A stretch of DNA of 64,000 bases from Oikopleura dioica. Lineage: Eukaryota > Animalia > Chordata. Each line of letters begins with the position of its first letter. Position 1 is the first letter of the stretch. Below are positions 11,686 to 63,100 of this stretch, piece after piece. The stretch is taken from NCBI GenBank assembly GCA_907165135.1, contig OU015567.1, positions 10,974,001-11,038,000 of the forward strand, in the 5' to 3' direction. The notes under the pieces are model-generated. The model searched no databases. It was not told the origin of the DNA and saw only the letters and a program-made list of their open reading frames with translations. Position numbers and translations under genes: made by a program.

Positions 11686-11697
11686 TTAAAAGTCGTT

Positions 11698-13931: not shown

Positions 13932-16466
13932 CTCGTTTGACTTCCCCGGCGCTTGATCGCCAGCTCCGCTTCGATATATGAATCAGTTCTTGTTTTGTCA
14001 TCTCTTGATAATACCCCGACGATTACTTAAAAATGAGTTGGTTCAACGTCGAGGAAGTCTTTTTCAAGTATTTATTCTGTCAAAATACCTGTAGAAATGC
14101 CAACAAAGAGATTGACCACGAAGGCTCCAACAAACACCGAAGCACTGGCTAATGGAGCCCTTGTGGAGACATTGAGGAACATCAGCATCGGTGTCATGCT
14201 GAGGGAGGTTTCAAATTTTGCGGACGGAAAATTTTTTTCTCAGATTTTTGTTTCATCTGAAAAAGCGTGAAAAATGACGCAGATTGATGGTCGAATGATC
14301 GCTCCAGCAAAGATATTTTGGGAGAAAAGTAATTTTGAATGTTCAAAAATGGGTCAACTGGTCACCGTCACTGTGACTCATAGAAAATAGGTACTTTTAT
14401 TTTCTCTTCGGATTCTTCTTTTTCAGAGCGAGATCTAGTGGGAGGCCTAAAATGAGCGAGGTTTGATAAGGGATTTGATGAGATAACATCATCTGAAAGA
14501 AGTGATGAAAAAGCTCTGAAAATGGGCCGAAAATAGGAACGAGCAGCGACAAAACGACCTCGAAATCAGGCGCTTAAAATAAGGCTCATCCCATTTCCGA
14601 AACTGAAAATTTCGGAAAGGAAAGGGCAGCGACTAAACGGGGTCGAAATACGGCACCTCAGAATAAGTTTGGCCCATTTCTCATCATAAACATGATCCTG
14701 AATCATATGATCCATGTCGCCTATCCAACAAATGAAAAAATTGGTCACTCCTTGGAGTTATCAAGTGTTAGACCCACCATTCGACTCGTCTCAACGAGCT
14801 TAACAAAACTGCGCTATCGGCTTTCACCCTTTTTCAAAAAATCCTTGCGGACCTTTTTATTCTTGCCAATATCAGATTGCAAATTGACTAATTTCATATG
14901 AGACCTCCCGCGTCGACGTAAATCTCCATCAAGTTCTTGCCAACTGCCGAGCTCAGACTTTCATTCCATCAAGTGATCTTCTCCGCAGACGTCCAGAAAA
15001 CACTCCTTCGCTCTCGAAATAGTCGGAAGAGACGATCTAGATCCTTGATAATTAAATTTAAGGGGCTTTAAGCGGGCTTACAGCGGGTAATCGCTCCCCT
15101 TAAAATTTTTTGAAACCATAATAAAGGAAAAACTTGTATAATCTATATTTTTATACCAAATGGGTGAGGGTGGGGTTGGGGACATAACTGAGATTGATGA
15201 ACTCAGAATCCCTCGCCTATGTCAAGCCCCTTAAATTTAATAATCAAGGAACGGGGCTGAAACAAGCCCCGTAAATTTAATTATCAAGGATCTAGATCGT
15301 CTCTTCCGACTATTTCGAGAGCGAAGGAGTGTTTTCTGGACGTCTGCGGAGAAGATCACTTGATGGAATGAAAGTCTGAGCTCGGCAGTTGGCAAGAACT
15401 TGATGGAGATTTACGTCGACGCGGGAGGTCTCATATGAAATTAGTCAATTTGCAATCTGATATTGGCAAGAATAAAAAGGTCCGCAAGGATTTTTTGAAA
15501 AAGGGTGAAAGCCGATAGCGCAGTTTTGTTAAGCTCGTTGAGACGAGTCGAATGGTGGGTCTAACACTTGATAACTCCAAGGAGTGACCAATTTTTTCAT
15601 TTGTTGGATAGGCGACATGGATCATATGATTCAGGATCATGTTTATGATGAGAAATGGGCCAAACTTATTCTGAGGTGCCGTATTTCGACCCCGTTTAGT
15701 CGCTGCCCTTTCCTTTCCGAAATTTTCAGTTTCGGAAATGGGATGAGCCTTATTTTAAGCGCCTGATTTCGAGGTCGTTTTGTCGCTGCTCGTTCCTATT
15801 TTCGGCCCATTTTCAGAGCTTTTTCATCACTTCTTTCAGATGATGTTATCTCATCAAATCCCTTATCAAACCTCGCTCATTTTAGGCCTCCCCACTAGAT
15901 CTCGCTCTGAAAAAGAAGAATCCGAAGAGAAAATAAAAGTACCTATTTTCTATGAGTCACAGTGACGGTGACCAGTTGACCCATTTTTGAACATTCAAAA
16001 TTACTTTTCTCCCAAAATATCTTTGCTGGAGCGATCATTCGACCATCAATCTGCGTCATTTTTCACGCTTTTTCAGATGAAACAAAAATCTGAGAAAAAA
16101 TTTTTCCGTCCGCAAAATTTGAAACCTCCCTGAGATAAGTGGCTGACACTCCCGATAAAAGGCCACAAGATATGATGTGCACCATGTTTAAGGAAGTAAA
16201 TCGCTTCCAACGACAAATCAAAAGACCAATGAGACCTGTCAACAGCGATAAGGCTTGAATTTTTAAGAGAAGGTTTATCTTCGTCTTTTACCTGCATACA
16301 GTGAAAGTAACACGATAAATAAGATGGAAACAATAGACTTGACTTCATTGTCTTCAAAAATGTACCCAACTGTAGATCTCCTTCCTTCGGATAGAGAAAT
16401 CACCTCTTGCATAATACTTTTTCTGTCTATGAGCATCACAATGCCCGTGCTAATCAACGAGTTCAC
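13932..16466 (-). CDS. Multi-pass membrane protein (partial), possibly a degenerate Ion_trans-type S5-pore-S6 region; one exon interrupted by a foldback element
   Basis: Exons 16466-16292, 16253-16131 plus 14199-14089, and 14025-13932, with GT-AG introns of 38 and 63 nt, read VKSIVSILFIVLLSLYAALSLLTGLIG...SATYL|SMTPMLM...SVFVGAFVVNLFVGISTVIVGVL. The gene probably extends both ways (candidate exons 13170-13900 and 16500-18300). The channel assignment rests on motif resemblance only. Confidence 0.6.
14203..16130. mobile_element. 1928-bp foldback element with ~858-bp near-identical arms; 3-bp TSD TGA (PIF/Harbinger-like ends)
   Basis: Arms 14203-15060 and 15272-16130 are reverse complements; termini GGGAGG...CCTCCC; TGA at 14200-14202 and 16131-16133; no transposase ORF. 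Confidence 0.92.
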
Positions 16467-18766
16467 AAATTTGATTGCTTTCTAAGTAAGATTTAACAGC
16501 ATCAATTTTGGAACTGGAGCTTAGTCCATCCACACAGAAAATAAAGCTCATTACAGACAACGTACTTTTGAATGGATTTTCTTCGCCCTTCAAATCTCTC
16601 TCACTTCTTGAAAAAAGCGACATTTTCAGAAAGATTTTCTCGATTGTTTATAAAAAGTTGAAGATGGCAAAGTGGCTTGGCGAGGGAGAGGGTTATCGAA
16701 ATTAATTACCGACGAGGGAGTTAATTTAACACACTTCTCGTGTACTCGGAAGACTTTCTGGGTCAAACAAGACATCAAAATTCTGACGGACATCTGTATT
16801 TGCCGCTGAAATCTTCAGCCTGAAGAAACTGTCAAAAATAACAAGCAAAAGTTGTAATCGCAGATCAGAATCTTTAATATCGCGAAATGCATCAATTTTC
16901 TCGAGTTCCTCAGAAGGACCATAATACGAAAACAAATTTTGTGATATGGGATTTTTGAATGTACATGCTGGGCCAGCTCTGGTCTCTCTTCAAAACGTAT
17001 AATTCTTTCGCCTTTTACTAAAGAATTCCGTGGAGAGGGACACTCTTATGAGTATTTGATTTTTCTGAAGCCCTACACGGGGCAATCTATCCAAACCTCC
17101 CATAAACTTCACAAGTTTCATTGATACGTGTTGAAAATGCGTCAACTGAAAACTGCAGATTTCAAACAGTAACTGATAACAAATGTTATAGTGTTATTTC
17201 AGTTTATCACAGCTTTACTTTATTTTTAATAATTCGAATCATAACCAAATGTTTACGAAACAGTCTTTTTCAGCAAAATGATTTTGCCAAAATCTTAGAA
17301 TGAATCTACCATGGAGTTGAGCTCTAAGTGGAGATAGGGGAATCTGAGGTTCGCGAGAATACATGGTCTTTGCGCGAACCCGAATTCTGAGCGCGCCTAA
17401 TTTTGCGACAGCTGTGTCTAGCCAATCAGCGGACATTTTTATATGCAAATTAGGTCAATCCTGCTTTCAATCGAAGAGTTGTGTTTACTTAAATCACATC
17501 TCCATCATATAAGGCCTTGTTATTGCACCTTTGAGTTCCATTTTTGAGATACTAGTAGGTTTGATTAAGTGTCACAACAATGTTAGCACTTTTCCTCGTT
17601 GTCCTGCTTCAGTTTGTCGGGCCACTGCGAGTCTATTTATAGAGATAACCAAAAGTAACGGAAGAATTATTCGAAGAAAGTTCAATGCAAATTACAAGCT
17701 AGTAATTTGAAAAGGTGACAAGGTCCCTTTTAGAATTCTTTTCTTTTTTGAAAAATTAGTTGTTGCATGTCCGGAAGAGAAAAACGTGCCCACTGCGACC
17801 ATGATCCTTTTTGCGAAACCATCTTTCGGCCACAAGGGATGGCCATGAGCACCAGCGGTGCCCCCAGCTGGCGGTATTTGTATTCTGCCTTGTCTATAAA
17901 TTCATTCTGGTAAAATTCTGAGATTTCTGAGGAAAAAGCAATGGCTTTCTTTTCTTTTCGGTTTTACATCCCTTTGATGGATAAATCAATAACACCTTGT
18001 TTGCATTCTGGCCTGCTTCGGTAAGCCATGTTCCAACGAAAATGGAAATCCTCAGCTTCCTCCCGGCTCAGCACCAAAGCCGACAGAGCTTTCTCAAACC
18101 CAGCGCCGGCTTAGCCGCACAAATGAGCCAAATCCAACAGCAAAGTTTCCGAGAAAGCAGCGGAATAGGAAAACTTCTGTCTAGCTAGTAAGCCTTTTCG
18201 ATTTTACGCAGCATTAGGCCGTATAAATTTCGTTGAGCGTTTCAGTCACGTTTTTAAGAATCACCGAAATTCGACAAATTCCAACGTGTCTTTAGTATTC
18301 TCTCGCGGAGAAAGCGCCATGTCAAGAGAAAATTATCTTATCTTTATTGTGCCCAGTCAGTGTTTAACCTGTCTACTGGGACGATAAGAGATCCATTAAT
18401 CAGCATGTCTCCCGCCGAGATTTGTCACTTTTGACGGTTCATTAGTGGCTGCTCGATGAACACGTACCAACCATATGTTTATGAGACGCGGAAGGCTTAC
18501 GAAACTCGCGTGAAAAAATTTGGAATCCCAAAAGCCGATCCGATTTGATTCCATTAGTCGCTTGCTGACGCGTTTTTACTGACGTTTTACTGTAAATAGA
18601 TGACGTAAATCTTTTAATTTCACTTTTTCTGTTTATTCATTAATAAAAGTAACACAGTTTTAATGAAATGAAAAAAGATCAAAACTGCAAATCGTACAAA
18701 ATATAAAAAGTTAGTGCTCAAGAACTAGGAGTGTATATAAGTTAGATTAGTTAGCATTAGCAGCAT

Positions 18767-20530
18767 TTATGGAATATACACTTTTAAAATAAGTTTAAAA
18801 GCTTCATCATTTTTCGTATTTTTTCTTGAATTCATCTGTTAGAGGAACTTTCGTATCTAACTCTGTCGATAATAGCTGCTTCACCCCACAGAGACCACCC
18901 GACATATGAAGATAATTCCAGCTTCCAGTTTCATAAAGCATTTTGGCGTTTGTAAATGGATGTCCTGGATTTGTGCAAGCTCCATGGCCTTGTTCTTTTG
19001 AACAGATTCGAAAATTGTCAATTTAAGACATGCAGAAATAAATATTCTTTTTATAATTTCAAATCGGTTCCTGTTATGTCCAAGAATTCACTGAGCTTCA
19101 TCTTTGGATATTCGACGATTTCTGTTTCCGCCGGTTTTCTTTTCAAAAGCAAGTTCTTTGCCGAACAGTCGATAATGCCTTCCGCACAGCTAGTAAAAGT
19201 GTCCTTTGCCTTTTGGATTTCTTCTTTCATTTTCTAAAATTTCAATTACTTGGCTGACTAGATAAAGACACAAATGTATTTACCTCATGTCCAAATGCTT
19301 CAATTTTTCTGTGCAAAGAAGCATTGAAATAATCGTACATCAGAGTGTCTGTTTTGTGAAACTCTTCAAAAGTAGCTTGTCTTTCAGCATTTAGTGGTTC
19401 AATTTCGTATTTTCGTACATTAGTGCTTTCTTGGTACAAATGCTCGTATTCAGCGCAGAGCATATGTTTCATCAGAACAATTCCTTCCCAAAAATGTTCG
19501 GTAATCAAGACCAGGTCGAATTGCTTGTCGAGTCTCGCCAAACTCTCCTTCACGTATTCCATATCGTTTATTCTGTCGAAATCCATCCCGAGCTCGAATG
19601 ACTGGGGGTTACTGTTGATGGATAGGGAAATAAAAAGAGCTCGCGGGAAGCGAATTAGAGTGCGACTTACGTGGACCGCAATCTCAAAAATCCACAATGA
19701 CACTAAAAAATTAACCCGACTTAGTTACGGAAAGGCCGATTTCAAATCGGCGATTTGACCTAGGAAACTCAATCTTCGCTATCCAACCGTGTCCCTTACT
19801 CGGTAAGCGAAAGGTATCGATGCATCGTACGTATTTGGGAGAATGTCGAGGAACTCTTCAATTGTTTGGTTCGGCTTTCCATTAGCGTACTTGTTGACTT
19901 TGGAGAAGAGCAGGTTGTAGGGGAAGCCCCAACAAGCCCATTCACAATTGTTCGAGTTTTTGTAAAAATAGTTGTAGGTCGATCGAAAAGTTGCCAGCGG
20001 CTCACGAACAGTTGTGAAAGTTTTGACTTTCGCTCTATTAGGGTCAAGAATCGGCGGCAAATAATCCATGTTCCAGCGGAAGTGATACTCCATTGCTATT
20101 AAAAGGCTAGAACGCTGCATTAGAAAGCTTTATCTATTTTTGAAACCCACGGATATCCTTAATCCCTTAATTCCAAATCGCAACAACGACAATCTTTCGC
20201 AGCCCTTTCCTAAAACTGGATCGTTTCTTTTGCTATTTCCCCAGCAGAGCTCGTTGAATTTTGCCGGAAAACAACCTCCTTGAACTCCCATTTGCGGTTT
20301 TTCCATTTTGCTGAATGCACCGATGATATGGAGCCATTTGTCGACAATGTCTTTAAATGTCGTCGAAGCTGTTTTGTGTTTTTTGAGGAAGATGATTCCA
20401 TCTTGAGGCTGACACTCGTTCTTCCATAAATCGAGATCGGCTGTCAGTGGAATTCCTTTGAATTCATGATAGAGGGCGGATTTTCTGTTTTCAGTTGTTT
20501 CTGATGGAGGTTCTCGACTTGCTCGCCCAA
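18767..20530 (-). CDS. Galactose-3-O-sulfotransferase family protein (GAL3ST-like)
   Basis: PAPS-binding IIFLKKHKTASTTF (~20400-20360), YHFRWN, FTTVREPLATFRSTYNYFY, QSFELG, LDKQFDLVLITEHFWEGIVLMKHML and DTLMYDYFNASL are typical of the family. The 5' exon(s) and the exact 3' end are uncertain. Confidence 0.85.
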
Positions 20531-23500
20531 TAAGACTTTTTTGAGTTAAAAAAACTAAGTTTCAACTTCAGAAATGATGATAGTTGAACTCAATGCCTGA
20601 TAATAATGAGAAATACTAAAGATATGATGATCTTGTGATTCCTTAGCCAACCTGAAAAGTATGTTTTGAAGGTAAATACGTCTAGCGATGGCTCAATAAA
20701 TATACTCCAGCTATTGCAATTTATTGTTTCGTGAGTGATTATACCTTTTATATCTTCTTGAGATGTCATTCTCTTAATCTTATGCAGAGATACAGCTAGA
20801 AGATTACGATGAGAACGAAAAGTTTCACGGAACTTTGCCGCCGGCAGTGTCGATCGGGGTTCTTGAGCTGCAAATTTTAATGAAATTTTGTCGGTTAAAA
20901 TATTCATCCGATAGAATAAGAATTTAAAATCGAGATGAATTTCGAAGCCGGCAGATACCGTAATGTCGCTCGTATTTTATTTCATTTTTATATTTCTCAC
21001 CCAGCATTAAGGCGCAATTACAAAGATATTTAATAATAATAAAAGCCCTCAAATTTGACAAGATCAAAATGAAGTTGGACCTCTTAGGTCATATTTTACA
21101 AAGCTGGGGCATAAGAAATGCTAGAAACAATCCGATTTCCGGCTGGGCCAATTTCTCTCCGGTGGGACAAGACGACATTTGAAGAAACCGGAAATTATTT
21201 GCGCAGATAACTTGTTGATTGAGCTTCAGAGAAATGCTTAATTAAAAAATAATTTTCCTGAGAAAGCGAATTCTCTCAGCTTTGCCAAATATGCACGCAT
21301 ACATTTCGCAGTGCATTAGCCACGTCCATGATCAGGATCAACCCACACCCGTTCATTACGTTCTTGCAGATTGCCATCCAAACAAGCTCATGAATTCTTA
21401 CAGGACCGAGTCAAAACTGAAACATGATCAGTCAGTTGCAGAAACCCGTGTGTATGGAATAACTCATTTAAGCTAGATTTCAAATCTGAAACTTCCTTTC
21501 TCATCTGATCGGCTGCTGAATACAAAACACGAGAAGGTAACGCATCGCTTCTAAATGCGCCCACAGAGTCTGCTCAGTCTGCGCATCTGACTTTATTCCT
21601 GGCGCTTACTCTCTGACATCCGGAAAAGTTCATGCATACATGCGTTCCATACGTCCTCCTACACGTGTTCGTATCCTTTTCGGCGAATCATTGTCAACTG
21701 CATCCAGCAATCTGGTACTTTTTAAGGAAGGATCGACAAATTGAAAGAAGTATTTTATTTCATTAAAATTGTTGAATTTTTTTTTCTATTAGGAACTAAA
21801 GGTATCGATCAAAGTTTAAACTTTTTTTTCCCGTTTTTAATAAACACTGTATGTTTTCGCGAGCGTGTACGTTGTCAGTGTTATGTAAAACACTAACTGC
21901 ACGTTTAGTTCGCTGCTGGTAAAGTTTGAACGTACGCATAAACACCTGTCCAGCTCGAAAAAGAGGGGAGAGTGCTCTAAGTCCGCGAGGGCTTGTCACA
22001 AAAGTGCAGATCCACTTTGTCCGAACATCGTTGTCCGTGTTTGCTGTCCCTCCATCGCCGGAAACGTGCTCTTGTCGCCAAAGCGACTAAATTTTGACAA
22101 TCCGGAAAAATCCACCAAATCAGAGGATAGATGCTCGGATTCCGAGAAGATTATCTGCGCTAAAATTAGAAAGAGATACTGTCTCTTTCTTTTGTAATTG
22201 TTAACTTTCGTAAATCCAAAAGAATCAAACAAGTTCATTCGCCCACTTCACCTTTCAGAAATTGTATCTCAAGCAAAAAGAATTACTATCAAACCACAGA
22301 ATGATTTCGTAACGTTTCTTCGCCTCGTATCTCGAAAACTTTCGCTATCTAAATTCAACAGGATCATTAAAATCTTCTCAGGCTTTGATCCCAAACAATT
22401 TATAATTTTCAACCCCTCGCTCATAAATTTGATAAGAGTTCGTTTCCCATCCATTTTTTCCGCGAATTAACGGGACCCAGGAAAGACAAAATAATCGTTT
22501 TCGAATTTTGGCTGAACCGGGTACTCAGTTTTGCGGTCAACTTGCAAACTCTGGCGAGTACGAGCTTTTTGTAATCGCTTAAAAATCGAACTCAGGGGTT
22601 CCCAGCGATCAAGTCATTAGCTCCTGACGTGGGATTCTTCATTCACTGAATTAAAACTGGCCGCTGAAAATTTCATCCCTCGAATCAACTGTCAGTTGTA
22701 GCCCGGAATTCGATTGAAGGATCTTTTCATGTAAAGATCCTTACCCTTGAATTCGAGTTTTATTATCAATACATGTTGTGAGAATATTAATACTCCTTAA
22801 TTTTGATTGAAAATAATATTTTGCCAAGAAATATAAAATGTTCCCAGAAGTAAAGCGCTTTCCGAGTGTCGGAAGAACTTGCATGCCGCAAATAATAACT
22901 CAGGGGCGCGGTTCTTTGAGGCGCCGCAGACACACACTGGACGGATCTTCGTGTTGACTCCAGTGGTCGAGCTCCATCCGATAGCCCGAATTTGACGATG
23001 CTGCAAAGAAGATAACACACGCTCTTTTTCAATATTAAAATCCTTATCAGAAATGCTTTCCTAAAAGTCTGTCTTTTCCAAAATTCGTACGATCCCGGAT
23101 ATAATGTAACAAGCTTTTTAGCTCTTTGCTCAAACCGTTAAAGAAAAGATAACGAAAACCAGCAGCTTCGTTTTGAAGGAAAAACTATGTTCACTTGCCA
23201 AGATACGCAAAGTTCAAAACGCATTTTATCTTCACATCCGCTTTCACAGAAATACAAAATGTTTTCTAACTTAGTCGTGAAAGAGTCCTTTTGAGCGGAA
23301 AATGAGAGCAGATTGTACCGCAAATTAGCCGTCTTGGAACTTTGATGGGTTGATAATTTTTTCTCTAAAAGCGTCTTGCGCCTTATCAAAACTCCCTTAT
23401 CATACTTACCGTAACTTCACAGCCTAATCGTTGGGTTTGCAAGCTTCTTTATTTCACTAGGATAGTTCTACAAAGGGCATAAGCATAAATCTTATTTTAG

Positions 23501-44729: not shown

Positions 44730-47700
44730 GATAATTGAACGCCTCGTTTAATCCGAGCTCCTTATCAGCTGTTTTGTGAGCTGGCTTGTCAAGTAGATAA
44801 AATTGAATCTAAAAAATTGTCAATTTGAAGAAGAAAAAATTGAGAAAAGAGATTCTTACGTAACAGATCTTGTCCCCACAGGTCAATCCTCGAAGCAGGG
44901 GTGGATATTTTGATATCAAACCATTATTTCAACCGTTTTTGATTTGAAATTTCAAAAGATAATCGCAATTTCAATTTTTTCAAATTTCATTGTCTTTGCA
45001 AAGAAAATGATTGTGCTGCCAATTTTGAAATTTCAATCATTTCATTTTTCAATTTTCAAAACTTTTTCAAATCCAGACTCGTTTTGCAGATTTTTTGCAG
45101 ATTTCATTTTCATTTCAAATCTAAATAGGCTCACCGAGCGGGGGCGCCGAGCAGTGAGCCCGCCGAAAATAAACTGGAAAATCTTGCCTATAAAATAAAT
45201 CTTTTGAATTTTCGAATTCGGGAAATTTCTCGCAAGCAATAAACTTTATATAGTAAAAGCTAAAAACTAACAATTTCAAAAGCCCACGAGAGCTGTCGAT
45301 TTCGGAGCATTTCCGACTCTACGCGATTTTTTCGGAAAATCCGCCGATGCTTCCCAGTCGTCTTCGTTTGCCCAAGATCGCCGTTTGCCCAAGTTAATAT
45401 ATTTGATGTGAATAAATTTTGATTTATTGACAAAAATCGAGTGGTCTCCGCTCGCCTAAGTCGCTTTTTCCCCGAGATCGTCGTTTGCCCAACTTGAGGA
45501 AACGGCGATTTGGGTAAAGGGCGATGTGAAGTAAATTTGATTTATTCATCGCTTAACTTTATTTACAATATTGTTATTGACTCCAACGTTAATCCCGGCT
45601 TCTCCAATGGCAATCTTGGCTTCAACAACTTCAATCATGGTAACCGTTGCTCCGACGTCAACGGTGGTTTTTCAAGCGTCAATCCCGGCTTCTCAGACGT
45701 CAAGCTCGACTTCACCAACGTCCATTTCGGCTTCTACGTTAACCCCAGTTTCACGAACTTCAATCTTTCGGGCTCTGTTGACAATCCTGGCTTCTCCAGC
45801 GTCAATCCCGTTCCTCCTAGATTGGGTTGACGTTGAAGAAACCAGGATTAACATTTGCTAAGCCAGGATTGAAATTGCTGAAGCCTGGATTGACGATATT
45901 GAAGCCAGAATTGACGTTGAAGAATGCACGATTGGCGTTATTGATGCCAGGACTAATGTTTGAGAAGTCGGGATTGACATTGGAGAAACAAGAATTGAAG
46001 TTGGTGAAGCCAGGATTGACGTTTGAGTAGTCGGGATTGACGTTATAGAAGCCAATGAAAAAATTTATTGATCAATCAATTGAAATTATTTCACATCGCC
46101 GAAGATCTCCGTTTCCCAAGCTGGGCAAACGGCGACTTGGGGAAACTGCGACTTGGGCAAACGGAGACCACTCACAAAGATCCCCGTTTCAAAGAGTTGG
46201 GCGAATGGCGACTTGGGGAAACGGCGACTTGGACAAACGGAGACCACTCGATTCTATCCGTTTCCGCGCTGTTCTCTGATCCTCCGATCTGATCAGAGCA
46301 GTGTTTGAAACAGTGTTTGAAAAATGATGAGCAAGCGCTCATTCTCACTCACTCATGTAAAATTTCAAGGCCATTGCTCGCGCTCACTCGCTCACCTTAA
46401 AATTGCGAGATCTCTGCTCGCGCTCACTTGCGCTCGCTTACGACCTATTTTCGTAAAAATAACGTCCGATTTGCGAAATCTTTCCTGATTTCATTTTTAA
46501 GGGCGCTACCGTCGATTCCCCAAGTTGACCCTTGAGTAACTCGGGACTTAGTTATCTAGGCGGTCCCTATTTAGGCGTATTGAATAGATCAATCCTAGAC
46601 CTTAACTTTAACAGAGAGGTTTCTCAATTGATTAACAAAAAACGGCTAAATTTCGGCTTGAAGTCAACATCTTTGCCAAAATGGCCTAAATAAAGGCTTG
46701 AATAACTCAAAAATAAGCCTGATAACGAAATCTCATTTTATTTTAAACTCATTATTTGAACATTGATATTTAAAGTGAAAGAAGGATTTTTAAGGGATCC
46801 CCTCCCGATTTGAAAAATTTCATCGAGAGCTTTTGCTTGGTATAATTTTAAAATGATCATCGTCTGAGGATCATTTCCATATATTATGTCAAGGGGCGTA
46901 CGTCACGTGATTAGCCGTGACAAAGGCTTGAAAATGGCTTATTTTGATGAAAAAAATTACTAAGAAAAAATTCGCAAAATTTTCGACTTTTTAAAGTCGA
47001 CGAAATCATATAAATGAGGGCTTTTTAGAAAGCTTAGACGAAGCTGAATCAGAAAAAATAGGTCCTGATAAAATCAATTGCCACAAAGAGGTGCTAGAGA
47101 GCATAAAAAGTCACAAAAATGGCAAAAAGCAGTCGAAAAAGTTTTTGTTTAGAGAAATTCTAAAATCCTTGACCAAATCGGATGCCTGTACTAGAGATTG
47201 TAGAAGAGGTATCAAGGAAAGTTTGGATAATAAAATAAGGGGAATATATTAGAGGTGAAAAAGTAGTTCGACTTTGAAAATGGCCTAAAACCGGGTTTTG
47301 GCGACTATCAATGTCTTTAGAGCGATTTTTATAGGTGATTCCCCTTATCAAATTTATTTTCTATACTAGAGATTGCTCATTTAGAAATGCTCTTTAAAAT
47401 AAGCCCCTAACCTTCAAGATAGCTAAGCCCGAAAAAGTAGTTCGACCTCAAAGTTGGCGAAATCGGGGGATCCCTTAATGAGAAACGAAAAATAAGAAAA
47501 TTTATTTTTTGAAAATTGTTTCTCAAAAATCTCCCGGGCCTTGAAAATTTCAGTGTTTAATCATCACGAGCGAGCGCTCATGCTCGCTCACTCATGAAAA
47601 AGTTTGGGGCTTCTGCTCGCGCTCGCTCACTCACGTTAAAATCGGGGAACCTTCGCTCGCGCTCGCTCACTCACGAAAAATTTCGGGGCTCTGCTCGCGC

Positions 47701-49170
47701 TCACTCGCTCATCTTAGTTTTGACCATTTTTTGCCTGAGAATCGAATAGTCGGACGAGCGCGGGCGCGAAGGGTCCGATTTTTGGATGGGCGGATGTGCG
47801 CGGGCACAACTCCAATCGAAAGACACGAAAAACAACCAAAACCCACCGAAAACCCACCGACCAACAAAGAAAACGGACGCAATTTACATAGAAAGGACCT
47901 ATTTTACGCAGAAAATATCCGATTTTCTAATTTTCTGTGTAAAATAAGTCCTTTTCTCGGTAAAAAGTCGACTCGGGTTTGACTTTCATGGGATATGCCA
48001 TGAGCAGAGATAGCGAAGCTGACGGCTAAGGTTAGCTTAGCTACCGGGAAATTTTTTTGACCAGCTTCGCTACTCTCAGCCAGGGTTGTAAATCACCCTG
48101 ACCACCGCACCTCGAGGGCGGGGTGGTTGCATAGCACCTTGATATTTTTTGAGGTGGGGTGGGGTGGTCACGGAAGCACCTCAATTTTTCGAAGCCGTGG
48201 CAATGTACGACATTTCCAACTCTGAGTCAGGTTCAGGTGCCTGACTCAGGCCAAAATACTGGGTATTTTCGACCAAGTTCGTAAAATTAAAAAATTTCAT
48301 TTTTATGCACCCTGAGGGTGAGGTGGGGTGGGGTGGGTGGATTTGGATCCACCCTGGTGATTTTTGAGGTGGGGTGGGGGTTCGAAGCCACCTTAGAATT
48401 TTTCAGGGTGGGGTGGGGTGGTTCTCACGGCGAAGTCGAAATGTCGGGGTGGTGTTAGGGTGGGGTGGCTGGGGTGGGGTGCTCTCAGCTACCGGGAGAC
48501 ACTGATGAGATCCCCCCTAAATCATAAAAAATAAAGGGTTCACTAGAATTATCCAAAAGGGAAATAAAGCGGGCTTACGTTTTTCCCCTCCTTGAAATCT
48601 GCAAAAATTCGTTTTTTCAATTTCATTTTTCAAACTGTTTTCAAATCGAAAAACAGGCTTCATCAGCTGAAAAGTGCGTTTTTTCAATTTCAAATTTATT
48701 TCAAAACCGTGCGAGAAGCTTTTCTGTTTGCAATCATCGCACATTTCATTTTTCAACTTTTTTTCATTTGCAAAGCTATTTCATCAGCTTTTTTTTGCAA
48801 TTTCATTTGAAATTTCAGATTTTGAAATGATGAAATTGATGATTCCACTTTTTTGAAAAACGGGTTGATATCAAAATATCCACCCCTGCCTCGAAGGCGA
48901 TTGATGCGCAAGTAGCCGACGCCAGCAGCTGCCGATAGTGCCGTTTGGAACTCTGGCTTTGGGTTGTTCAACGTTATCAACTGACGTGGACAAAGATGTT
49001 AGCGCAAAATAAGCTACAGTAATTCTCTTTAGGATCAGCTGCGATTATCCCGAAGAGTCTTGAACTGTTGAATAACCGACTTTTAGAAATTCTTCGTAGA
49101 ATCGTTCCTTGACAACTGGGCCCATCTCGTTGACATCTGTTATATTTACTTGAAGAAATTTGTGTCGCTT
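44730..49170 (-). CDS. Exons of an unidentified multi-exon gene; one exon interrupted by a 4-kb hAT-like element
   Basis: Reconstituted 120-nt exon (48980-48889 plus 44887-44860) lies between an AG acceptor and a GTAAG donor and reads LITLNNPKPEFQTALSAAAGVGYLRINRLR|GLTCGDKICY. It continues through a 51-nt GT-AG intron into IQFYLLDKPAHKTADKELGLNEAFNYLQYQIQ. Further candidate exons at 43415-43190, 49170-49010, ~50000-49900 and 53070-52850. Confidence 0.55.
45345..46257. mobile_element. Nested foldback element with ~15-bp subterminal repeats (CGCCGTTTGCCCAAG-like) and a central 21-bp minisatellite in inverted halves
   Basis: AATCGAGTGGTCTCCG at 45436 pairs with CGGAGACCACTCGATT at ~46240-46254; GGCGATGTGAA pairs with TTCACATCGCC. 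No clear TSD. Confidence 0.7.
46308..46440 (+). mobile_element. Left-end fragment of a GCTC-rich hAT-like MITE
   Basis: Starts CAGTGTTTGAAA (compare CAGAGTTTGAAA at 9565), followed by GCTCGCGCTCACTC motifs. A similar fragment lies at 47551-47715. Confidence 0.5.
46794..47474. mobile_element. TTAA-flanked MITE (681 bp), GGG...CCC ends (Kolobok-like), nested in the 4-kb element
   Basis: TTAA-GGGATCCCCTCCCGATT ... AATCGGGGGATCCC-TTAA. Confidence 0.8.
47551..47715 (+). mobile_element. Second GCTC-rich MITE fragment
   Basis: Starts CAGTGTTT; three tandem GCTCGCGCTCGCTCACTCAC-type units. Confidence 0.5.
48081..48481 (+). mobile_element. 401-bp GGGGT-rich insertion with an 8-bp direct flank (CTCTCAGC); G-quadruplex-prone
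   Basis: CTCTCAGC at 48073-48080 and 48482-48489; left end CAGGGTTG; repeated GGGGTGGGGTGG blocks; no matching right TIR. Confidence 0.6.
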
Positions 49171-52100
49171 CCCAGCGAAACATTTCTGTTGATGGTTTTA
49201 TCTTGACAGGTTAAATTCATCCCGCGCCGATTTGAAATTAATATTTTGGCGCTCTAAAGTTCCTGTTGGCTGAAATCCGGAAGGCACGGAATTAGAAATT
49301 ACTATCGCCTTGACCTGGTGTCACTCAAAGTCCCCGCAAATTTCATGATTCTCAGCTATCAAACTAAGCCGAAATCGTCAGACAACTCCGACGGTGAAAA
49401 TTAGCCCACCGCGACATCTGTCATTTCTTGTTGTGGGAAAACCAAAGCCTAAACAACGATTTTAGTAAATTGTGCTCAATTCGCGGCCGCTTCTCATTTC
49501 AATTCATCTTTTTTTCGAGGAGGATGACGAAATTAAACTGCGTAATTATGGGCTTCGCTTTCAGCTATATTGGTCAGGTGGGCATCCTTCACAGAAAAAA
49601 GATGTATTACTGATACAGTATCAGTCGCGAAATTTTGCATTATACTTTGAAGTTATTTGGCCAACTCGATTTGCTACCTTAGACTCTTTTTCCAAAGAAT
49701 CAATTAATTGAATCTTTTTTAGTGAGAAAGAAGAGTGCTTTCTGTTTATTGTAGATTGGAGTCTATTTTTAGAATAATGATGAACGTTATGAATGGCGCC
49801 CATGATACAATTAATTAGAGGCTATTTTTTATCAAGAATAAATGGAAAAAAATGATAAGCGGAAATGAGCTGTGAGGTTAATTTCAAAATTACGAACCTG
49901 GACGGCATCGAAGGTCTTATGCGGGTTTGCGGAAGGTGACTCGTTGTAGTAGTAAATCGTGTAGTCAGTGTGGTGGTGATGACCCGCTGAAAACGGCACG
50001 GCTCAGACTGCGCTCGAGAAAGATTACTACTCGATTCTGACACCGACCGTGGTCGATGCTGAGCTGCTTGATTACCACAAATCCAAAATATGCCACCGTC
50101 GTTTTTCGCGAGTTTTTTCGTTATTTTGTTTTGAATAAATTTATGTTCGATTCGCACTTTATAGAATCTGCTTCTATTTGACGTTCTTATTACAAAAATT
50201 TTGTAAAAAAGAAGCTCTTGGAAATTTCAAGCAGTGAGCTGTACTCGTTGGCTTATCTGGCGTCGAGGAAGTGGCCGATGCGATGGAATTTGTAAATTGT
50301 GCCAAAATGGAAAGCGATAACAATGTCCGCTCGCTCAGTTCTAAGCACCACAAAACTCTTGTAAGACGTTTTATTCAAGAATTCTTATGCAAGGTCTATC
50401 TTTCTATTTCTTTTAAGTTCATTTCAAAGGATAATTGTCTGTTCATTTCCTCGAGTGGCCACAAAAGGAGCCTATGAAGGTTGACCCAGTTAAAGTGAAA
50501 ATAACTTCCTGTCTTTTGATCTGTTTGGAATGTTTAATTGGTTTCCAAATGGTTCATTTTTAGAGAAGCTTAGTATCAAGTCTGAGCCGATTCCTGCGGT
50601 TACGGGCTGAACAGAGCGCGTCCTGAGCTGGAGAGGCTGCATGCTTCGTGTTCTGAAAGAGAAAGAGAAAGTTAGTTGTGTTCCCATTCTAAAGGGATTT
50701 GTGAAGTAATGAGCTCATTTACGCAAGCAAACTGACTGGCAAGAGTGTAGCCACGGAAGAGCTATTTGACCAAAACTAATTAAAATGCTAAAGCGTGGAG
50801 GCCATTTCGGACAAGAGGCTTATGGTAAGGACTCCCAGAGTCAGGAGCCTTACGGGCTCCTCCCTTTTCGAAAAGAAAAACAAACACCGTCTGCCATCTT
50901 CTCCAAAGATTGCATAAGGTGCTTAACACGTTTTTGCTTTTTGGGCTGAAAATTTTACGAAATAATTTGATAAAATAAAAAAAACAAGAATATAGTCTCC
51001 AATTCATTTTGTTTGGGGCAAAAACTTTTGGGTAAAAAGTTTCGAACTATTCCTTTGTATGTAAAGATGTTCAATTCTAGCTACTTTCAGCAAGCATCTT
51101 TATTGTTGGTTAATATTGGAGACTCTTAGCTGCCAACGAACTCATTCTTTTGGCCAAAAACAAAACGGGAGCTTAATGAGAAACCATCGTTATCAAATTA
51201 TCAAAAACGTTTTGGGGGTTGATCTTTCGGTAGAATCAAGATAGTCTACCGGTAAACAATCGAGATCTTTGTGGAGAGATAATCAAATTAGTTTCTTTCT
51301 GGAACCTGAGTTGTCTATGAAAGAAACCTTGCTGCTTAGCACTTACTTATTTACTTACTTGTCAGTTAAAGAATTTGAATTAAGTTATTGATTGATTATT
51401 GCGCGGTTATTATTTATGATCGGTAGACTTACGAGTCTTCAGGACTAGCTCCTTCCCAAAAAATCCAATCTTCTGTGGAAAATGCCCATTCAAAGGTGTA
51501 CGCCTGTCCTTTTTTCGGAGTTCTTTTCGAAGACCAAAAGTTCGCATCGATGTATCGCACTTCTTGAGATCCCATTTTGTAACGTTCCAAAAATCTGACT
51601 CTAAGCCGTATCTTTAAAGTTGATCTGCGGGGCTATTTTCACGTAAAAGCATTTCGTGGATAAAGATCGTGGGTTATTGAATTGGGTGAATTTTGATTAC
51701 TGACGTTTTTCAAAAAGCAAAGTCAAAAATGTGGTTAACGTGATTTGAATTTGTGAGTGACATTAACCCCGACAAGGTAACAGACTTTAGAAAAGCGCCT
51801 GAGCGATTGCCGATTTCGCGCATTTCAAAAAGAAAGGAGGCGAAATCTGATTACGCTTTGGGAAAAAAGTGATTGTGGCAAATTTGGCTTGTGGCAGATT
51901 TTAAGTCAGACTTTTTGAAACTCTTTTAGGAAGTTGCAGAAAAATTGCTAAAGCATTGAGTGGTTACTGGGGAAGTTGAAGTGGTGCTGGACCGGTTGGT
52001 AAATTACAGGTTCTGCCTGGCGCGTCTGGTTACATAGATTGTTTTTGGAACGTTGCCTTGTACCAATACTCGTTTGGATCTGGAATCTGCCAAAACCACT

Positions 52101-55598: not shown

Positions 55599-55964
55599 TT
55601 ATCCCATTTCCGGCCGAATCGCTAGAAAGATGACATTGCAAATCTTGACACGTCTAAAAACGCAAACAGCGCTTTCGGTTAAATCAGATTGACCCGGGCG
55701 AGCCTGGACGACGCGCAGCGGGATGGAAACGGAAGTTTCTGAAAAGTCGAATGTCAAAAACATGTCAATGCTCGTTTCTAAGCGCAAACCTGTTGGTATT
55801 GAATAAAAGACATCAAGTGCATACGACGCGGCCTTGTCCGGATATTTGAGTCTTTTTTGGCAGCTCAAACATGTGTTTCGCAATTTCAACAAATCAAAAT
55901 AACGAACAGAATCAAATCCGCGTAAAACATAAATTGAGACATTTGTCAGCCGCTTTCCTTGCAC
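55599..55964 (-). CDS. Putative exon with an F-box-like N-terminal motif
   Basis: 121-codon open frame; LTNVSIYVLRGFDSVRYFDLLKLRNTCLS resembles the F-box pattern. Resemblance only. Confidence 0.3.
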   Translation of the reverse strand: MQGKRLTNVSIYVLRGFDSVRYFDLLKLRNTCLSCQKRLKYPDKAASYALDVFYSIPTGLRLETSIDMFLTFDFSETSVSIPLRVVQARPGQSDLTESAVCVFRRVKICNVIFLAIRPEMG

Positions 55965-56256
55965 TCCACTGCCACGCTACTTTCCCACGAACACTTTTTA
56001 TCAGATTTCATGAAAAAAATATTTAGATGATGGTTCAGTTTTGATGTTCTTTCGAAATTGCAATGTGAGAAATGCCGCTCAGGTGAGGAGTCGAATTCAG
56101 GTTCGCATTCCACAGCGAGGAAAAGATGGAGATTCTAGTCAGGTTGAAGATCACCCAAACAGAGCACCTCTAAAGTCGAATTCCCAGCTCAATTTACCAG
56201 TAAAGACATTTCAGAGACAACAGAAAAGGATGATTTTTTCCGTCGCTGGGCTCGAA

Positions 56257-56903
56257 AAAACCTGAGTCAGGGTCTAAAAAGCTTTCCGACTTCGCTTGAA
56301 TTTGAGAATAAAATAAAAAATTCTTCTTGCGAGGCCGCTCTGGACGTTCGTTTTTTGAAAGCCGCTTCGCGGCTTTTCTTTAAAGATCTTTCAGACCCTA
56401 ATTGAGGTTGGGCTAAGAAAATCTTTTTACGCATTCAGTGCTTGTTATTTTAATGCGTTTATTTTTTCCGTTTTTCAAAAACAAAGAAACTCACGTTTCG
56501 TTTCGCCTATTCGTTGTGTAACTGCACGTGAGTGTCGTTAAGAGAATTAGAACCCACCCGATTGAAAATAATTGCTTCGATTTTGTTTCTAATAAATATG
56601 GCTGGCCGCGCGTGTGTTTTAATTGCAAGCAACTGCGGGTTTGAAAAGGCGTCGTTTCAATAGTTTTCGCGTTATTTGCCGAAAATATGAAAATGACGGG
56701 GATCCACGTTCTCCTGGAATAAGCCGAAGAATGTGCTTTTTATTTATTGAAAATAAGAGAAACATTCCTCACCTGGCAGGTTACTCTAATTCAATTGTAA
56801 ACTCTTTCATTATCTGATCAAAAACGACATGTAAAAGGTTGATAAAAGGGCAATTTCGGCCTATTAGACGGATAAACAGTTTGAGGACCCTGACTCAGGT
56901 TTT
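56257..56903. mobile_element. Probable MITE defined by an 18-bp inverted repeat
   Basis: AAAACCTGAGTCAGGGTC (56257-56274) and GACCCTGACTCAGGTTTT (56886-56903); no TSD identified. Confidence 0.45.
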
Positions 56904-57024
56904 CAACACAGGTTACTGAGTCGAGCATGAAGGCTTTTCTGACGCTGACGAAGACTATTTATATTTCGCGCCACCAAAAGTGCAAACTTTCGCCAAGAGA
57001 ATGTCATGTTCATCCCGCATTCAC

Positions 57025-57945
57025 TCAAAACGGGGCGTTATGTTTGGCGCAGTCTCCACCGAAAACGCTTGTCTCTGTTAGAAATCTGTTCCTAGTGGGC
57101 TCGAGATCCGGCTCAGGCTCAACCTTTTTGACGTCCGTGACGAAATCCGGACTCATCAGCACTTCCAACAGTGGCACGAACTCGTAGTCGACACTCGTCT
57201 CGGGATTTTGAAACTCCGGGATGAAAATTGGACTGCCTAAATCAATTTTTACACGAGTCAGGAAGTAAGCTTTTTTGGAATTTCGTAATTTTTTAAAAGG
57301 CTGGTCGAAAATCTGACTTTTTCAACCCTTTCTCGGGTCTCAAAAAACGAAGCTTCTCGAGAAATGAATGAAAGAGGGATACCTCGCTTTCTGAATTTTG
57401 AAAAATTTGGACCGGCTTGGAATTTGGAATTTTTGAAAGGCAGGAATTTTCAATTAGGTCTAATTCCGGAATCCGGCGTGATTAGATTTTTTGATGAAAA
57501 CCTTTGAAAGACTCAAGTTGCTTCGTGTCGCACTCGAAACCATCGTAGAGGAAGTGAACTTTGTTGCCGGCGAAATCCCACTTGGCAGTCGTGTAGATTC
57601 CGTTTTTTCGCACCGACATGATCTTTCGAAAAGGCCATAATTTATAGAATAGAAAGTTTGCTCGCCTTTACTGCTAGTTTTCTACAGTAAAAAAACAGAA
57701 AATCAAGAATGGTCATTTGCGAGGTCTTTGGAAAATGCGTCTATAATTATTTGCAGAGCTTGTTTTTAAAATTACGGAGGGTTTTGACCACGAGGGTGTC
57801 GTTTTAAGGGACTCTTTCCTGATCTGGGTCGGCCCCGGGTCTTTGGTCATTGAGTCTGCGGTAGAATTTGAGAAATTCAGTTCCGGTGTTGCGCTCCAGG
57901 TTGACGACGCTCTTCGTGGCGTAGAACTCATAATCACTGAAGCGT
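57025..57945 (-). CDS. 3' exons of an unidentified gene
   Basis: Open, protein-like exons: DYEFYATKSVVNLERNTGTEFLKFYRRL; IMSVRKNGIYTTAKWDFAGNKVHFLYDGFECDTKQLESFK with a GT donor; and, after an AG acceptor, SPIFIPEFQNPETSVDYEFVPLLEVLMSP...F* (stop 57025). Confidence 0.5.
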
Positions 57946-59602
57946 CATTTTAAATACAGGACAAATTCATCATTGTGACTTAAATAAGAACAGACAGTTG
58001 TAAAGCCCCTTAGCAGGCGCAAAAATCCTTTCAGATTTATTTTGAGACGCTGGTCTCGACACCTTCTGAGGCCCTACACGGGTTAATATTTAGAGACTCC
58101 TAAAATAAAGAGTTCATCGAATTTACTTTCTTAATCCTCATTTGTTTGTTTCGCGTTTTCGCGCGATCAGAAACACTAAACCGCACGATTTAACATTCTA
58201 ACACATTCTTCTGTAAACATGACACTAGTAGAAGAATAGTAGTAAAAGAACAAACCTTGATACGATTTGAGAAGATACGAAAAAGAAGCTTACATATGCT
58301 GCATGTTGCTGTACGCACGAGTTACTCAAGTTATCTTATTTTGAAAATTAACTTCTCTTCATTATCATTTGAAATTTTCTTCTAAGAAGTCATGATGTCA
58401 GAAAGTCACCTTGTGAAGTTTGCCCATCTATCCGGCTGTCCCCCAACCGGATCGTCCGAAAAAACACACTGAAATAACAGCAAAGGGCCAAAGAATCTCA
58501 TTCTCTGCAATTTCAAATGGATCTAATAATGGCCTGGTCTACTCTCTATTAGAATCGTTTCTTTGTTTTTCGCGCATAAATACAAACTTCGGAGGAGCGT
58601 TTTCCATGCTCAGATGCCTTCGTTTCCAACAACTACAAACAGAACGACTTATCAGATCATCCCGAGAAAGGTCTTGTTCATGCTCGCTAGCGGTAAACAT
58701 TGCCAGTCAGAAGTGCTGTCAGTCAGCCCGTTAGAGATGTGATGATCTTTTGAATTTCAATGGAATTCATTCGGTGTAATCTCAGCGTTTTGACACGCCG
58801 CAGTCGGATGATGCCGCGGCCTCAATCTGCACCCTCTTCGGACGAAGGATAATTGTAAAACCCATGCTCCCCAGGCTTGGAATTTCATTCTTACATCAAC
58901 TGGTGCTCCAGATACGGAATTTGCTTCGTCTAAATTTTGTTGACTCTCAGACTCTATCTCAAATTCAAGGTTCTCTCGGCATCAATAATAGACGATCAAG
59001 TATAATCTGCGTAATCACATTCAACAATAATTATGTTTTTCATCAAAGTTAACAGTAGAAACCAATCGAACTTCACGAATAGACATCAAGATCGTGCTCT
59101 TGATACTTTCAAGTGCGGACTGTTTATTCTCACTGTAAAATATCTCAACGGAAATGAACAACATAAGCAATTCTCTTTGTATTTCTTCTGTTTAGTATTA
59201 TTACTTTTTTTAATCAATCGATTAGAGTTTGGGTACGCTTGATGCCGATCTTGGTAGCGTATAAACACATAAACGCACGCTTGGATTTTTTTATCGAGCA
59301 AGATTAAATTTTGATGGACGCAATTTATTTTGAGAAAACAAAATCAGGAGAGATTATTTTTGGTGTCCGCGAGATGGTATGCAAATATGCCGCGCTCGGG
59401 GATCGTGGAAAGTTTCAAATTGTTTTTCCAAAAGCATGAAAAGTCAGTAGGACACGTTCTGCGCCTTGCGCTGGAATGGAAGCTCCCCATAATAACTAAA
59501 TATAGAAAAGATAAAGCGAAAAGATGGAGCTCAACCAAAGCAGTAACTTCTCACTTTGGACTGGTTTGCTAAAAACAAGGGATGATATAATTAGTAGTTT
59601 AA

Positions 59603-59996
59603 GGGGGTAGAACTAGATTTTTGGAAAAAAACGTGATTTTCGGAAGGCACTTTAAATAAGAAAAAACTGTTTTTACTTATGATTACGCAATTTCCTCAAA
59701 AATGTTGCTAGATAAATGGTTAAACTATCTTAAAATGAGATTTAAAAAACTTGGCTAGTCACGTGACTCGAGAAATTTGAGGACGCGAATACGCTAAAAT
59801 TGCGATTTTCAAAGAGGTGGGTTGACGTTTCGCTCTCTAGCGCCAAAATGTGTTGACGAAAAAATTTTAAGAAAAATGTTGTTAGATCTAGGTTTGTTCT
59901 ATCTTCAGCCGAAGAGAGAATTTGAAAATCTAAGCTCTCCTGGCTTTGAGCGCCGGTCTAGAATTGCCTATTTTCAAAAAACCTAGTTCTACCCCC
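59603..59996. mobile_element. TTAA-flanked MITE (394 bp), Kolobok-like
   Basis: 14-bp TIR GGGGGTAGAACTAG / CTAGTTCTACCCCC with TTAA on both sides. Confidence 0.88.
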
Positions 59997-60179
59997 TTAA
60001 CGAGAAATTTGTAGTAAAAACTCATCAAAATTTTTGGTAGACAAAATCGCATCGGTTTTTAGCAAAATTTAGCCAGTAAAAAGTGTCAATGAAACTTTCT
60101 GAGAGAAATATGCGTTGTGTTTCTCCTAGAAGAAGATAATTTCCGCGTAAAATATCCGTCCAAGATCCGATACATTCGA

Positions 60180-63100
60180 TTATTTGCTCAACCCTCTTGC
60201 GGGCACTTTTAAATTATTGAACGAGAAATAAACTCGTTGATGCCTGTGAAACATTCTTTTAGTGGAACGTTGCTTTAGAAAGGGCCCGCTGTTTGAATCG
60301 CTTTTGCACCTGTGGATTTCGTTCCTGTAGTATTTTAGCGTCTCGTACTCGATCTCCGCCGGGGTTGCGCTGCAGCTGGCTTCTTCGCTATCGTCGGACT
60401 TATCCGCGCCTTGTGTAAAAAAGATTAAAAACAGGCGCTAGAACTCACCGTCTAGATTTTAATTGGCTTATAAGAATTTCCAAGAACTCCGAAAATCAAA
60501 AACCTCAAAGTTATCTTGAGAATGAGACGTTCTAAAATGAAGCTTCACCGGCTTTATGAAGGGTAAACCCGCTTTGCGTCATTTTAGCAATAAAATAATT
60601 TCGAAAGCATAATATGATAAGAAAAGATAGAATCTTATCATTACAAATTCAATATCGCCGTATGTTTACGAAACTCGCTTTTACGAAAAATGAAGTACTT
60701 ACATAATTGCTTGACAAGAATCTTGCGGATGATATTTATGATCAGCTCGACAAAGCCGAAAAAGGTCGCAGCCGAAATCCCCAAAAACAGGCCGAAGCAT
60801 CCTCCGAATGAAGTGACAATAAACTATTACGCGCTATAATACATCCCCTTTGCTCTAAGCTTAATTATTACTAATAGGTTATAACTATAGGGCCTTATAA
60901 CTAAGGGCCTATATTTTAGGGGTGCGGTAAGTTCATATTATATATAATCATTCAATTTATATGTCACTCGAGCCTCCAATGTCTGATAAATATCTGATGA
61001 ATGGGTACTCAGCATACTCTGCAGAAGTGTTTCGTTTTTGTTTCGAAACGTAAAGTATGAAATCATCGTCTGAAATTCGGAACACTTTTCCTTTGATCAT
61101 CAACTCGTTCGTTTCCATCGTAATTAATATCGAAGCAATGTCTTTCCAACGGTTCAAATTTGATTGCAGGTGAGTCAATAAGACAATTATAATTGTTGTT
61201 TTGAACAATTCCTACGTTGACTTCAGTATCGGTCGTAGTATTTATCCACTAATAAGATATAATCGTTTGATTGAAGAACACAAACAGATTTTGTTTTTAT
61301 CTCACCTTGTGCCCGTATTGAATCTGTTTGGAATGAGGCGTTGAATGATAGCAGTCCTTTTCTCTCCCGTTGATAAAACATAGACTTACTCAATTGAATG
61401 CAAGGAAGTACCGTTAAATTTAAGTTAAGGGCTTAAGTATCTCGCAAGTTTTAGTTGAAATAATTAATTGCTACCTGTCTGTTTGGTCCAGGGGTCTAAA
61501 TTCGCAGTGCGAATTCGCTTTATTGCGAAGCGATGCGAAGCGAAGCGAATTCGCTTTCGCTTCGCTTCGCACTGGAGAGCAGAATTCGCTTCGCTTTCGC
61601 TTCGCAAAAATTCCCAAATTTTCGCATAGATTTTCGCACATCAAGCGACTTTGCTTGATCAGAATGATCTTTATCAACAGGGCTTATCTAGAATCGAAGA
61701 TGATCTCCTCTCCTATCGAGCAAGGGTGACCATTCGGGCAAGAAATCGTCGATTGGCCATCCGAATGCCCGGCCGAAATGAAGGGCCAAGAGTCGCACCG
61801 TGCGAATGCCCGGTCGAGTTGGTGATGGGATTTTCAATAGATAAAGGTTTGAAAAATAAGTTTCGAGAGGCTTTTGATTCAGTAAGAGGAGCAAGAGAGC
61901 AAAAATAAGTGTAAAGAATGCGAAATTTAAGAATTTTCCTCGGCGCGGGCTAGACTGAAATGCCCGAAAGCGCTGAATTCCCCGAAAGTGCCGAACTTGC
62001 CAAAATGCCCGCTTTTGCCCGGCCAAATTTAAGGGGCTGAGAATGCCCGGCAGAACACATTTTGCCCGGAAATTGTCCGTTTTCCCCGACTTCCCGATGC
62101 CCGAACGGTCACCTCCGCTATCGAGTTTGTTACTAACTTGGAATTATCAACAGTTAGATCCACCATTCGGCTTATATTGACGAGCTGAAAAAGGTACAAT
62201 AACAGATTTTTTTGTTATTTTCTGCTTCAAAAATAGGTTTTTGAAATCATCTTTGCTTTTGAGTGGCTGATTGTTAAAGATTCTTGCCGAGAATGCGTTT
62301 CAATTCAAGCGAAAAAATTTTCGCTTTTTTTCGCAATTTTCAATGATATTTCGCTTCGCTTTCGCTTCGCACATGGGCGAAGAATTCGCTTCGCTTTCGC
62401 TTCGCAAAAAATTTGAAAAAATGGTTCGCTTTCGCTTCGCTTTCGCACTAGGATTTCGGCTGATATTTAGACCCCTGTTTGGTCAATAATGTTAAGTTCT
62501 TGTTTGTACAAGTTTGTACTTAGGAGAGCATTTATCAATGATCATGGATCGTTTTGAATTCCGGTTGATATTTTAGCCATCAAATTGATCAAAAATTGTT
62601 ATAAAATTTAGAATTCGTTCTGTTAGTGATTTTTAATTGCCGAAAATGGATGAAACTGGCAATTTTTCTTGGCGATTCTATGATGCACCAATTAATGGCT
62701 CTTTTATAATTATTAGTAAATTATATTTCACTACACAAGTGATCTTCTTATCAACAGCTCCTTATCGCACTTACAATTCACCCGGTCAACCTTCGATTTG
62801 AACGCCAGCAACTCTCGTTTTACGCAGCTTATGTGGTCTGTTCTTTGAGGTTTTCATAATGATTATTTACGAATTAATAACGAAAGTGAAAATTCGCGGA
62901 GTTTCAGATTGCTTTTTCAATAAATTTGGCAAAATTGGATCTACGCACTGCGAAAGCATTAGAGCTAGAATTTTGATAAATATTGCTTTCTCACGCGGAG
63001 GCAGAAAATGAGTTCTGTTTCTTGGGGTAGATTTTAAATTTTCTAATTTCATATCTCGTCCACGTGCGGAACCAAACTAACTCGATTTTGATGTTTTTCA

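Follow-up and report, generated by a model that had tools for sequence, protein, structure and literature searches.

A 64,000-nt stretch of the genome of the appendicularian Oikopleura dioica (OU015567.1:10,974,001-11,038,000; this whole stretch is the window, and all coordinates below are window positions) carries non-autonomous DNA transposons that appear to have inserted recently into coding exons of three conserved genes. We lean slightly towards the view that these elements, E1, E2 and probably E3, are tolerated through exact splicing as newborn non-canonical introns. On the minus strand they can be cut out as GG..AG, GC..AG and GG..AG, respectively, each time after an exonic AG and just as originally predicted (table 1). 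Splicing is plausible, and selection for compatible insertions likely, because these are young transposons in constrained exons, removable only under a G*-AG rule (an intron that starts with G and ends with AG), with ends that could form an end-to-end stem and with donors of the same type present in the window.

A profile search with two of the host exons returned only environmental reading frames, and the contigs of those frames were then aligned to the window. Three matter most here: L001 (~75% identical to the window), L006 (the Logan assembly of SRR7620404; ~80% identical) and L002 (97-99% identical).

E1 is a near-perfect palindrome, with two ~870-bp arms that are 99.5-100% complementary and flank a 195-nt loop; none of its reading frames matched a protein family. 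Since the arms are almost identical, the insertion is very recent. Its target duplication is the 5-bp CTGAG, not 3 bp as first read, and the uninterrupted site, with a single CTGAG, is present in both L001 and L006. An assembly palindrome artefact is ruled out by the 5-bp duplication of host coding sequence together with the clean empty sites in two lineages. The 234-nt host exon differs from L001 at 8/4/34 sites in codon positions 1/2/3 and the residues flanking the insertion are almost all identical, so E1 interrupts a strongly constrained exon. This exon encodes part of a conserved multi-pass membrane protein whose family was not assignable by Pfam; Pfam searches run piece by piece on exons of the E1, E2 and ASIC hosts found nothing, the galactose-3-O-sulfotransferase gene giving the sole match. 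Elsewhere in the same alignments, L001 (~486-540) and L006 (~486-537) share a 52-54-nt GA-AG intron (ACAG|GAAGC...AAAAG|TC) that has no counterpart in the window (~16371); its ends are conserved between both lineages and its interior has diverged. A further segment, L001:942-1337, is unmatched in the window and by eye resembles bacterial uroporphyrinogen decarboxylase; L001 is a low-coverage contig and may be chimeric past ~910.

E2 has a perfect 24-bp terminal inverted repeat (TIR), starting CAGGGGTGG, and internal tandem repeats. In L002 its insertion site is empty and the 8-bp target is present once; E2 is therefore recent or polymorphic. The host is a LolA_2nd_metazoa-like gene of ~19 exons, spanning ~57938-41131 on the minus strand, with many introns of 0.5-1.5 kb that are GT-AG and GA-AG alike. 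It yields ~19 colinear protein matches to a homologue on contig L003, which carries LolA_2nd_metazoa domains, and one L003 frame continues across the E2 site (LITLNN...LRINRLR|GLTCGDK). An alternative host frame (VDNVEQ...) was rejected, as L003 matches the LITLNN... frame. In the L003 homologue (L003:950-3646), one uninterrupted 458-codon frame covers the first 11 exons of the LolA-like gene, a large lineage difference in intron content. L002 itself (~1172-1401) diverges abruptly from the window at ~44568, inside intron N, into hairpin-like repeats, which may be another insertion polymorphism; relative to the window it is also missing 24 nt (49024-49047) and 14 nt (near 49620).

E3 lies in an ASIC/ENaC-like gene. 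Removing E3 and ten other introns from a hand-built 3' half of this gene leaves a single frame of 284 codons, free of stops, that extends across the cysteine-rich region as far as the DIGG and second transmembrane segment (TM2) motif, and a codon-usage score for the host exon gives a likelihood ratio of ~7 for coding, although this score is wrong for some true exons of the gene. That E3 lies in an exon is thus probable under this model; the original placement of all three elements inside coding exons stands for E1 and E2 on empty sites and homologous frames, and for E3 it depends on the gene model and this weak score. No related contig was found to reach the E3 site (an 84-residue ASIC frame gave no candidates, and a 105-residue frame gave two environmental fragments ending ~740 nt short), and scans of Joint Genome Institute (JGI) metagenomes matched neither the empty site nor the TIR. 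Its 10-bp direct repeat is a 7-8 bp duplication (originally given as 7 bp) extended by chance; the 8 bp given for E2 were correct. The ASIC-like model as a whole (60644-63694, minus strand) has 10 established introns, four of them non-canonical (i4, i5, i3 and i2), and the likeness of two of its stretches to the thumb segment 'C.DP.L..L' hints at an internal duplication.

The TIRs had been described as unrelated, which is true of E1 relative to the other two; those of E2 and E3 both start CAGGGGT. With their 8-bp and 7-8-bp duplications, E2 and E3 look hAT-like and would be non-autonomous derivatives at best: no open reading frame of either had any Pfam match, and so neither the BED finger nor the dimerization domain of a hAT transposase was found. 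Each of the three elements is present in one copy, with no second copy found within the window.

The fit to splicing was compared with chance by simulating insertions of each element in which position and orientation were random and the length of the duplication was that of the element itself, and counting as a success any exact excision starting with G and ending with AG. Random insertions were compatible in 13-14% (E1), 6-7% (E2) and 5-9% (E3) of cases, against 1.3% or less per element when only GT-AG was allowed; the relaxed donor rule thus widens the compatible target space ~5- to 20-fold. The joint chance for all three elements is 4-9e-4, bearing out within the window the predicted excess of splice-compatible exonic insertions over random placement, and for E1 and E2 alone it is ~1e-2. 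Two TTAA-flanked transposons in the window (10946-11690 and 59599-60000) are non-exonic and neither is excisable as a G*-AG intron. Donors of the same type as those of the elements occur at GG-AG intron i4 (AAG|GGAC) and GC-AG intron i2 (GAG|GCTC), whose removal is required for reading frames backed by homologues or motifs. The context AG|G was noted at six donors. At the three transposon donors it is automatic and not independent evidence, because the duplication supplies both the end of the upstream exon and that of the intron.

Non-canonical introns of the window (i1-i5, L, C, A, D and a GA-AG intron at 428-540) were catalogued from the L003 protein, from nucleotide alignments to L001, L004, L005 and L006, and from the ASIC model; A, D and L were identified as G*-AG introns against L003, and i4 against L004 and L005. 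For each intron, the best ungapped inverted repeat starting no more than 12 nt from each end was scored against 1000 dinucleotide shuffles. Seven of the ten non-canonical introns had terminal inverted repeats, whereas all 16 GT-AG introns lacked them (Fisher p 2e-4), no GT-AG intron falling below p 0.07, so that the predicted difference between the two classes is seen within the window. It persists when i1-i3, the introns picked in the original prediction, are left out (4/7 versus 0/16; p 0.004) and among homology-anchored introns only (5/8 versus 0/10; p 0.007). Introns A, D and 428-540 (which lies in the tandem gene pair; p 0.97) gave no terminal-stem signal.

The near-terminal repeats reported for i1, i2 and i3 are present (12/14, 7 nt and 7 nt; shuffle p 0.02-0.05 each). 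In i1 the 14-nt closing stem begins at the donor and the RNA fold closes end to end (z -3.4); in i2 the inverted repeat is AGTGACA, at offsets 5 and 10 (7 nt, or 12/13 with one gap), and excision restores the DIGG-TM2 motif. The fold of i4 likewise closes end to end (z -2.6). This intron is missing in two related lineages, L004 and L005, and the L003 homologue has no intron at the position of L. Across the stem-bearing introns, 0-6 nt separate the donor from the start of the 5' arm and 5-12 nt separate the end of the 3' arm from the acceptor; the fresh elements share this geometry (offsets 0 and 5 in E1, 1 and 7 in E2).

Table 1. Positions of the three elements, their duplications, host exons and candidate introns, and of the stem-bearing non-canonical introns (p, shuffle test; offsets in nt from the intron ends).
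Feature	Position	Strand	Details
E1	14204..16129	-	foldback-like non-autonomous transposon
E1 duplication CTGAG (5 bp)	14199..14203 (left), 16130-16134 (right)	.	
Candidate GG-AG intron over E1	14199-16129	-	exonic AG precedes
E1 host exon, upstream part	16130..16253	-	continues at 14198-14089
E1 host exon, downstream part	14089..14198	-	ends at GT donor; next intron 14026-14088
E2	44896..48888	-	4-kb non-autonomous hAT-like element
E2 duplication CCTCGAAG (8 bp)	44888..44895 (left), 48889-48896 (right)	.	
Candidate GC-AG intron over E2	44889-48889	-	exonic AG precedes
E2 host exon, upstream part	48890..48980	-	continues at 44888-44860
E2 host exon, downstream part	44860..44888	-	then GT-AG intron 44809-44859
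E3	61489..62477	-	989-bp hAT-like miniature element; terminal inverted repeat CAGGGGTCTAAAT
E3 direct repeat CTGTTTGGTC (10 bp)	61479..61488 (left), 62475-62484 (right)	.	
Candidate GG-AG intron over E3	61479-62474	-	exonic AG precedes
Predicted E3 host exon, ASIC/ENaC-like gene	62475..62518 + 61478-61475	-	50 nt in all
i1	18995..19070	-	76-nt GA-AG; galactose-3-O-sulfotransferase gene; p 0.03
i2	60802..60973	-	172-nt GC-AG; splits DIGG motif of ASIC-like gene; p 0.05
i3	61019..61090	-	72-nt GA-AG, stop-free; AAGTGTT (7 nt) at offsets 3 and 6; p 0.05
i4	63513..63612	-	100-nt GG-AG; inverted repeat GTTTAAAAT at offsets 6 and 10; p 0.005
i5 (predicted, ASIC model)	61142..61211	-	70-nt GA-AG; GTTCAAA at offsets 5 and 10; p 0.05
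L	49987..50593	-	607-nt GA-AG; LolA-like gene; perfect 11-nt subterminal inverted repeat CGGCTCAGACT; p <0.001
C (boundaries ambiguous)	55994..57091	-	~1.1-kb probable GA-AG; 8-nt repeat CAGATTTC/GAAATCTG; p 0.005

These observations suggest a route by which transposons could become introns. Non-autonomous DNA transposons would insert in minus-strand coding exons and duplicate a target in which AG, whether at its end or internal, precedes a G. Because the duplicated target holds AG before G, the unit 'element plus one duplication copy' begins G[G/C] and ends AG, and a spliceosome that already uses GA/GC/GG-AG introns could remove the element exactly. The TIRs would supply an end-to-end stem like that of most established non-GT introns in the window, and the short stem-bearing introns may descend from such insertions. 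The idea that a relaxed rule lets unrelated families become introns is supported in so far as exact excision works only under G*-AG; the splicing step is a prediction from sequence. A proposed series from fresh to decayed insertions is matched by introns of intermediate size, such as the 607-nt GA-AG intron with its perfect 11-nt repeat, and is not supported by the short introns, which have no duplication signal.

Several points weigh against newborn introns. No transcript, expressed sequence tag or annotated protein was retrieved across any of the junctions, and homologue searches gave no annotated Oikopleura protein (the query P0001 found only itself). E2 is missing from a population 97-99% identical to the window and the arms of E1 are 99.5% alike; both insertions are very young and could be loss-of-function alleles. 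Introns of 1-4 kb are unusual for the O. dioica genome, the donors GGAGG, GCAGG and GGGGT do not follow the AG|GAA pattern that prevails among established non-canonical donors here, the exon around E3 comes from a gene model, and the original count may have been limited to transposons that fitted the pattern. The first two of these would suit an explanation in which the insertions are young deleterious or recessive null alleles of the reference animal, unspliced, and the G*-AG fit reflects coincidence and selective noticing; a chance of ~0.01 for the two verified elements is not negligible over many windows. On the other hand, all three exonic elements are compatible against neither of the two non-exonic ones, and apart from the insertions the host exons are intact and strongly conserved. 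We consider null alleles unlikely, yet a serious rival, since all three elements are very young. Less probable still, in our judgement, is that compatibility is an inherent property of the elements or of how they choose targets, in an introner-like design, with no filtering by selection. For instance, if the E1 family targeted CTNAG and started with GG, every transcribed copy would form a GG-AG intron in either orientation. The near-palindromic duplication CTGAG/CTCAG does end in AG on both strands and both ends of E1 read GGAGG, while the hAT ends (CAG|GGG) place a G after AG. Yet target preference is not measurable with a single visible copy per family, the duplications of E2 and E3 share no common motif, and the compatibility of E3 depends on a chance 2-3-nt extension of its repeat.

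The stems of the short non-canonical introns present a separate difficulty for descent from transposons. They may be functional clamps that join weak splice sites, rather than transposon relics, their likeness to transposon ends being convergent, and we give this a substantial chance, a little below even. The target-like direct repeats claimed for the short introns measure 2-5 nt and are no longer than the direct repeats at GT-AG intron junctions (0-3 nt): no target-site duplication is found at the short-intron borders beyond the splice consensus. The stem offsets sum to 5-16 nt, and no single duplication length fits; with such short junction repeats, the target-like repeats are unsupported and the stems may as well be clamps as relics. 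The distance between arm and splice site is 3-8 nt (mostly 5) greater on the 3' side than on the 5' side, and i1 and i4 fold far better than shuffles; both points favour a clamp. Against this, the lineage-specific stem-bearing introns i4 and L point to recent gain, and fresh transposons have stems of the same geometry, at offsets 0-1 and 5-7. Both readings are compatible, as a relic may be retained for its function.

Algae and protists are established cases of introns born from transposons, and Fritillaria is a proposed one (PMC11282704, PMC9860276 and PMC13326754). The introners of Micromonas and Aureococcus are DNA transposons whose insertion creates introns (Huff, Zilberman and Roy 2016, as cited by PMC13326754; surveyed in PMC9860276 and PMC11282704). 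Like introners, the window elements have TIRs and target duplications in coding sequence, the element end would provide one splice site and the duplicated target the second, and excision would restore the original message. Unlike introners, they are single-copy members of unrelated, unspecialized families, their donors are GG or GC and not GT, and their splicing is only predicted; many near-identical copies serving as introns in unrelated genes, by which introners are recognized, are not seen within the 64 kb. Oikopleura is absent from the species named in PMC9860276. In Fritillaria borealis, non-canonical introns are described as derived from miniature transposons (Henriet et al. 2019, as summarized in PMC11282704). 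The two cases share an appendicularian host, lineage-specific non-canonical introns with TIRs and the idea of a tolerant spliceosome that neutralizes insertions; the Fritillaria introns, however, are mostly AG-AC or AG-AT and have duplications, whereas those of the window are G*-AG, the short ones have stems without duplications and the fresh elements measure 1-4 kb. Non-canonical G*-AG introns make up 11-12% of O. dioica introns (Bliznina et al. 2021, PMC8008620, citing Denoeud et al. 2010), and at least 10 introns of the window share their GA/GC/GG-AG boundaries. The 2023 re-annotation (bioRxiv 10.1101/2023.05.09.539028) allowed GG-AG sites through the hinted-splice-site option of AUGUSTUS, so that any gene model with 14199-16129 as an intron would probably depend on an RNA-seq intron hint. 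We found no paper linking O. dioica non-GT introns to transposons or terminal stems in a literature search that covered neither the 2010 nor the 2019 primary paper. In euglenids, the ends of nonconventional introns pair into a stem that joins non-canonical junctions, and repeats are present at the borders (PMC11282704); that lineage is a different one, and its junctions have no fixed dinucleotide, whereas the window keeps AG|G...AG.

A broader proposal, which we hold tentatively and with more doubt than belief, is that O. dioica non-GT introns are recognized via AG|G...AG plus a stem joining their ends, that any TIR transposon whose insertion duplicates a target containing AG starts out as a functional intron, and that the GA/GC/GG-AG introns with stems, roughly one in ten of all introns, are the descendants. 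If true, unrelated transposon families would be making introns now, which would explain the massive intron turnover of O. dioica. The origin of new introns is a long-standing question, its clearest cases being the introners of algae and protists and the miniature-transposon-derived introns of Fritillaria. If the window elements are spliced, ordinary and mutually unrelated transposons would be giving rise to introns in an animal, made possible by a relaxed donor rule and with all stages within 64 kb.

The two non-exonic transposons mentioned above have features of their own. The foldback at 10946-11690, whose arms show 85-90% complementarity, stops a few bases before an ATG at 11698 and may supply or disturb the promoter or 5' untranslated region of the adjoining gene. 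The other, a miniature element of 402 bp, sits between the ASIC-like gene and the LolA-like one; its terminal inverted repeat is 30 nt long, and its ends (TTAAGGG...) resemble those of the foldback. Near the start of the window, the tandem gene pair (128-2619 and 3284-5776) shows 74% identity over 2.5 kb.

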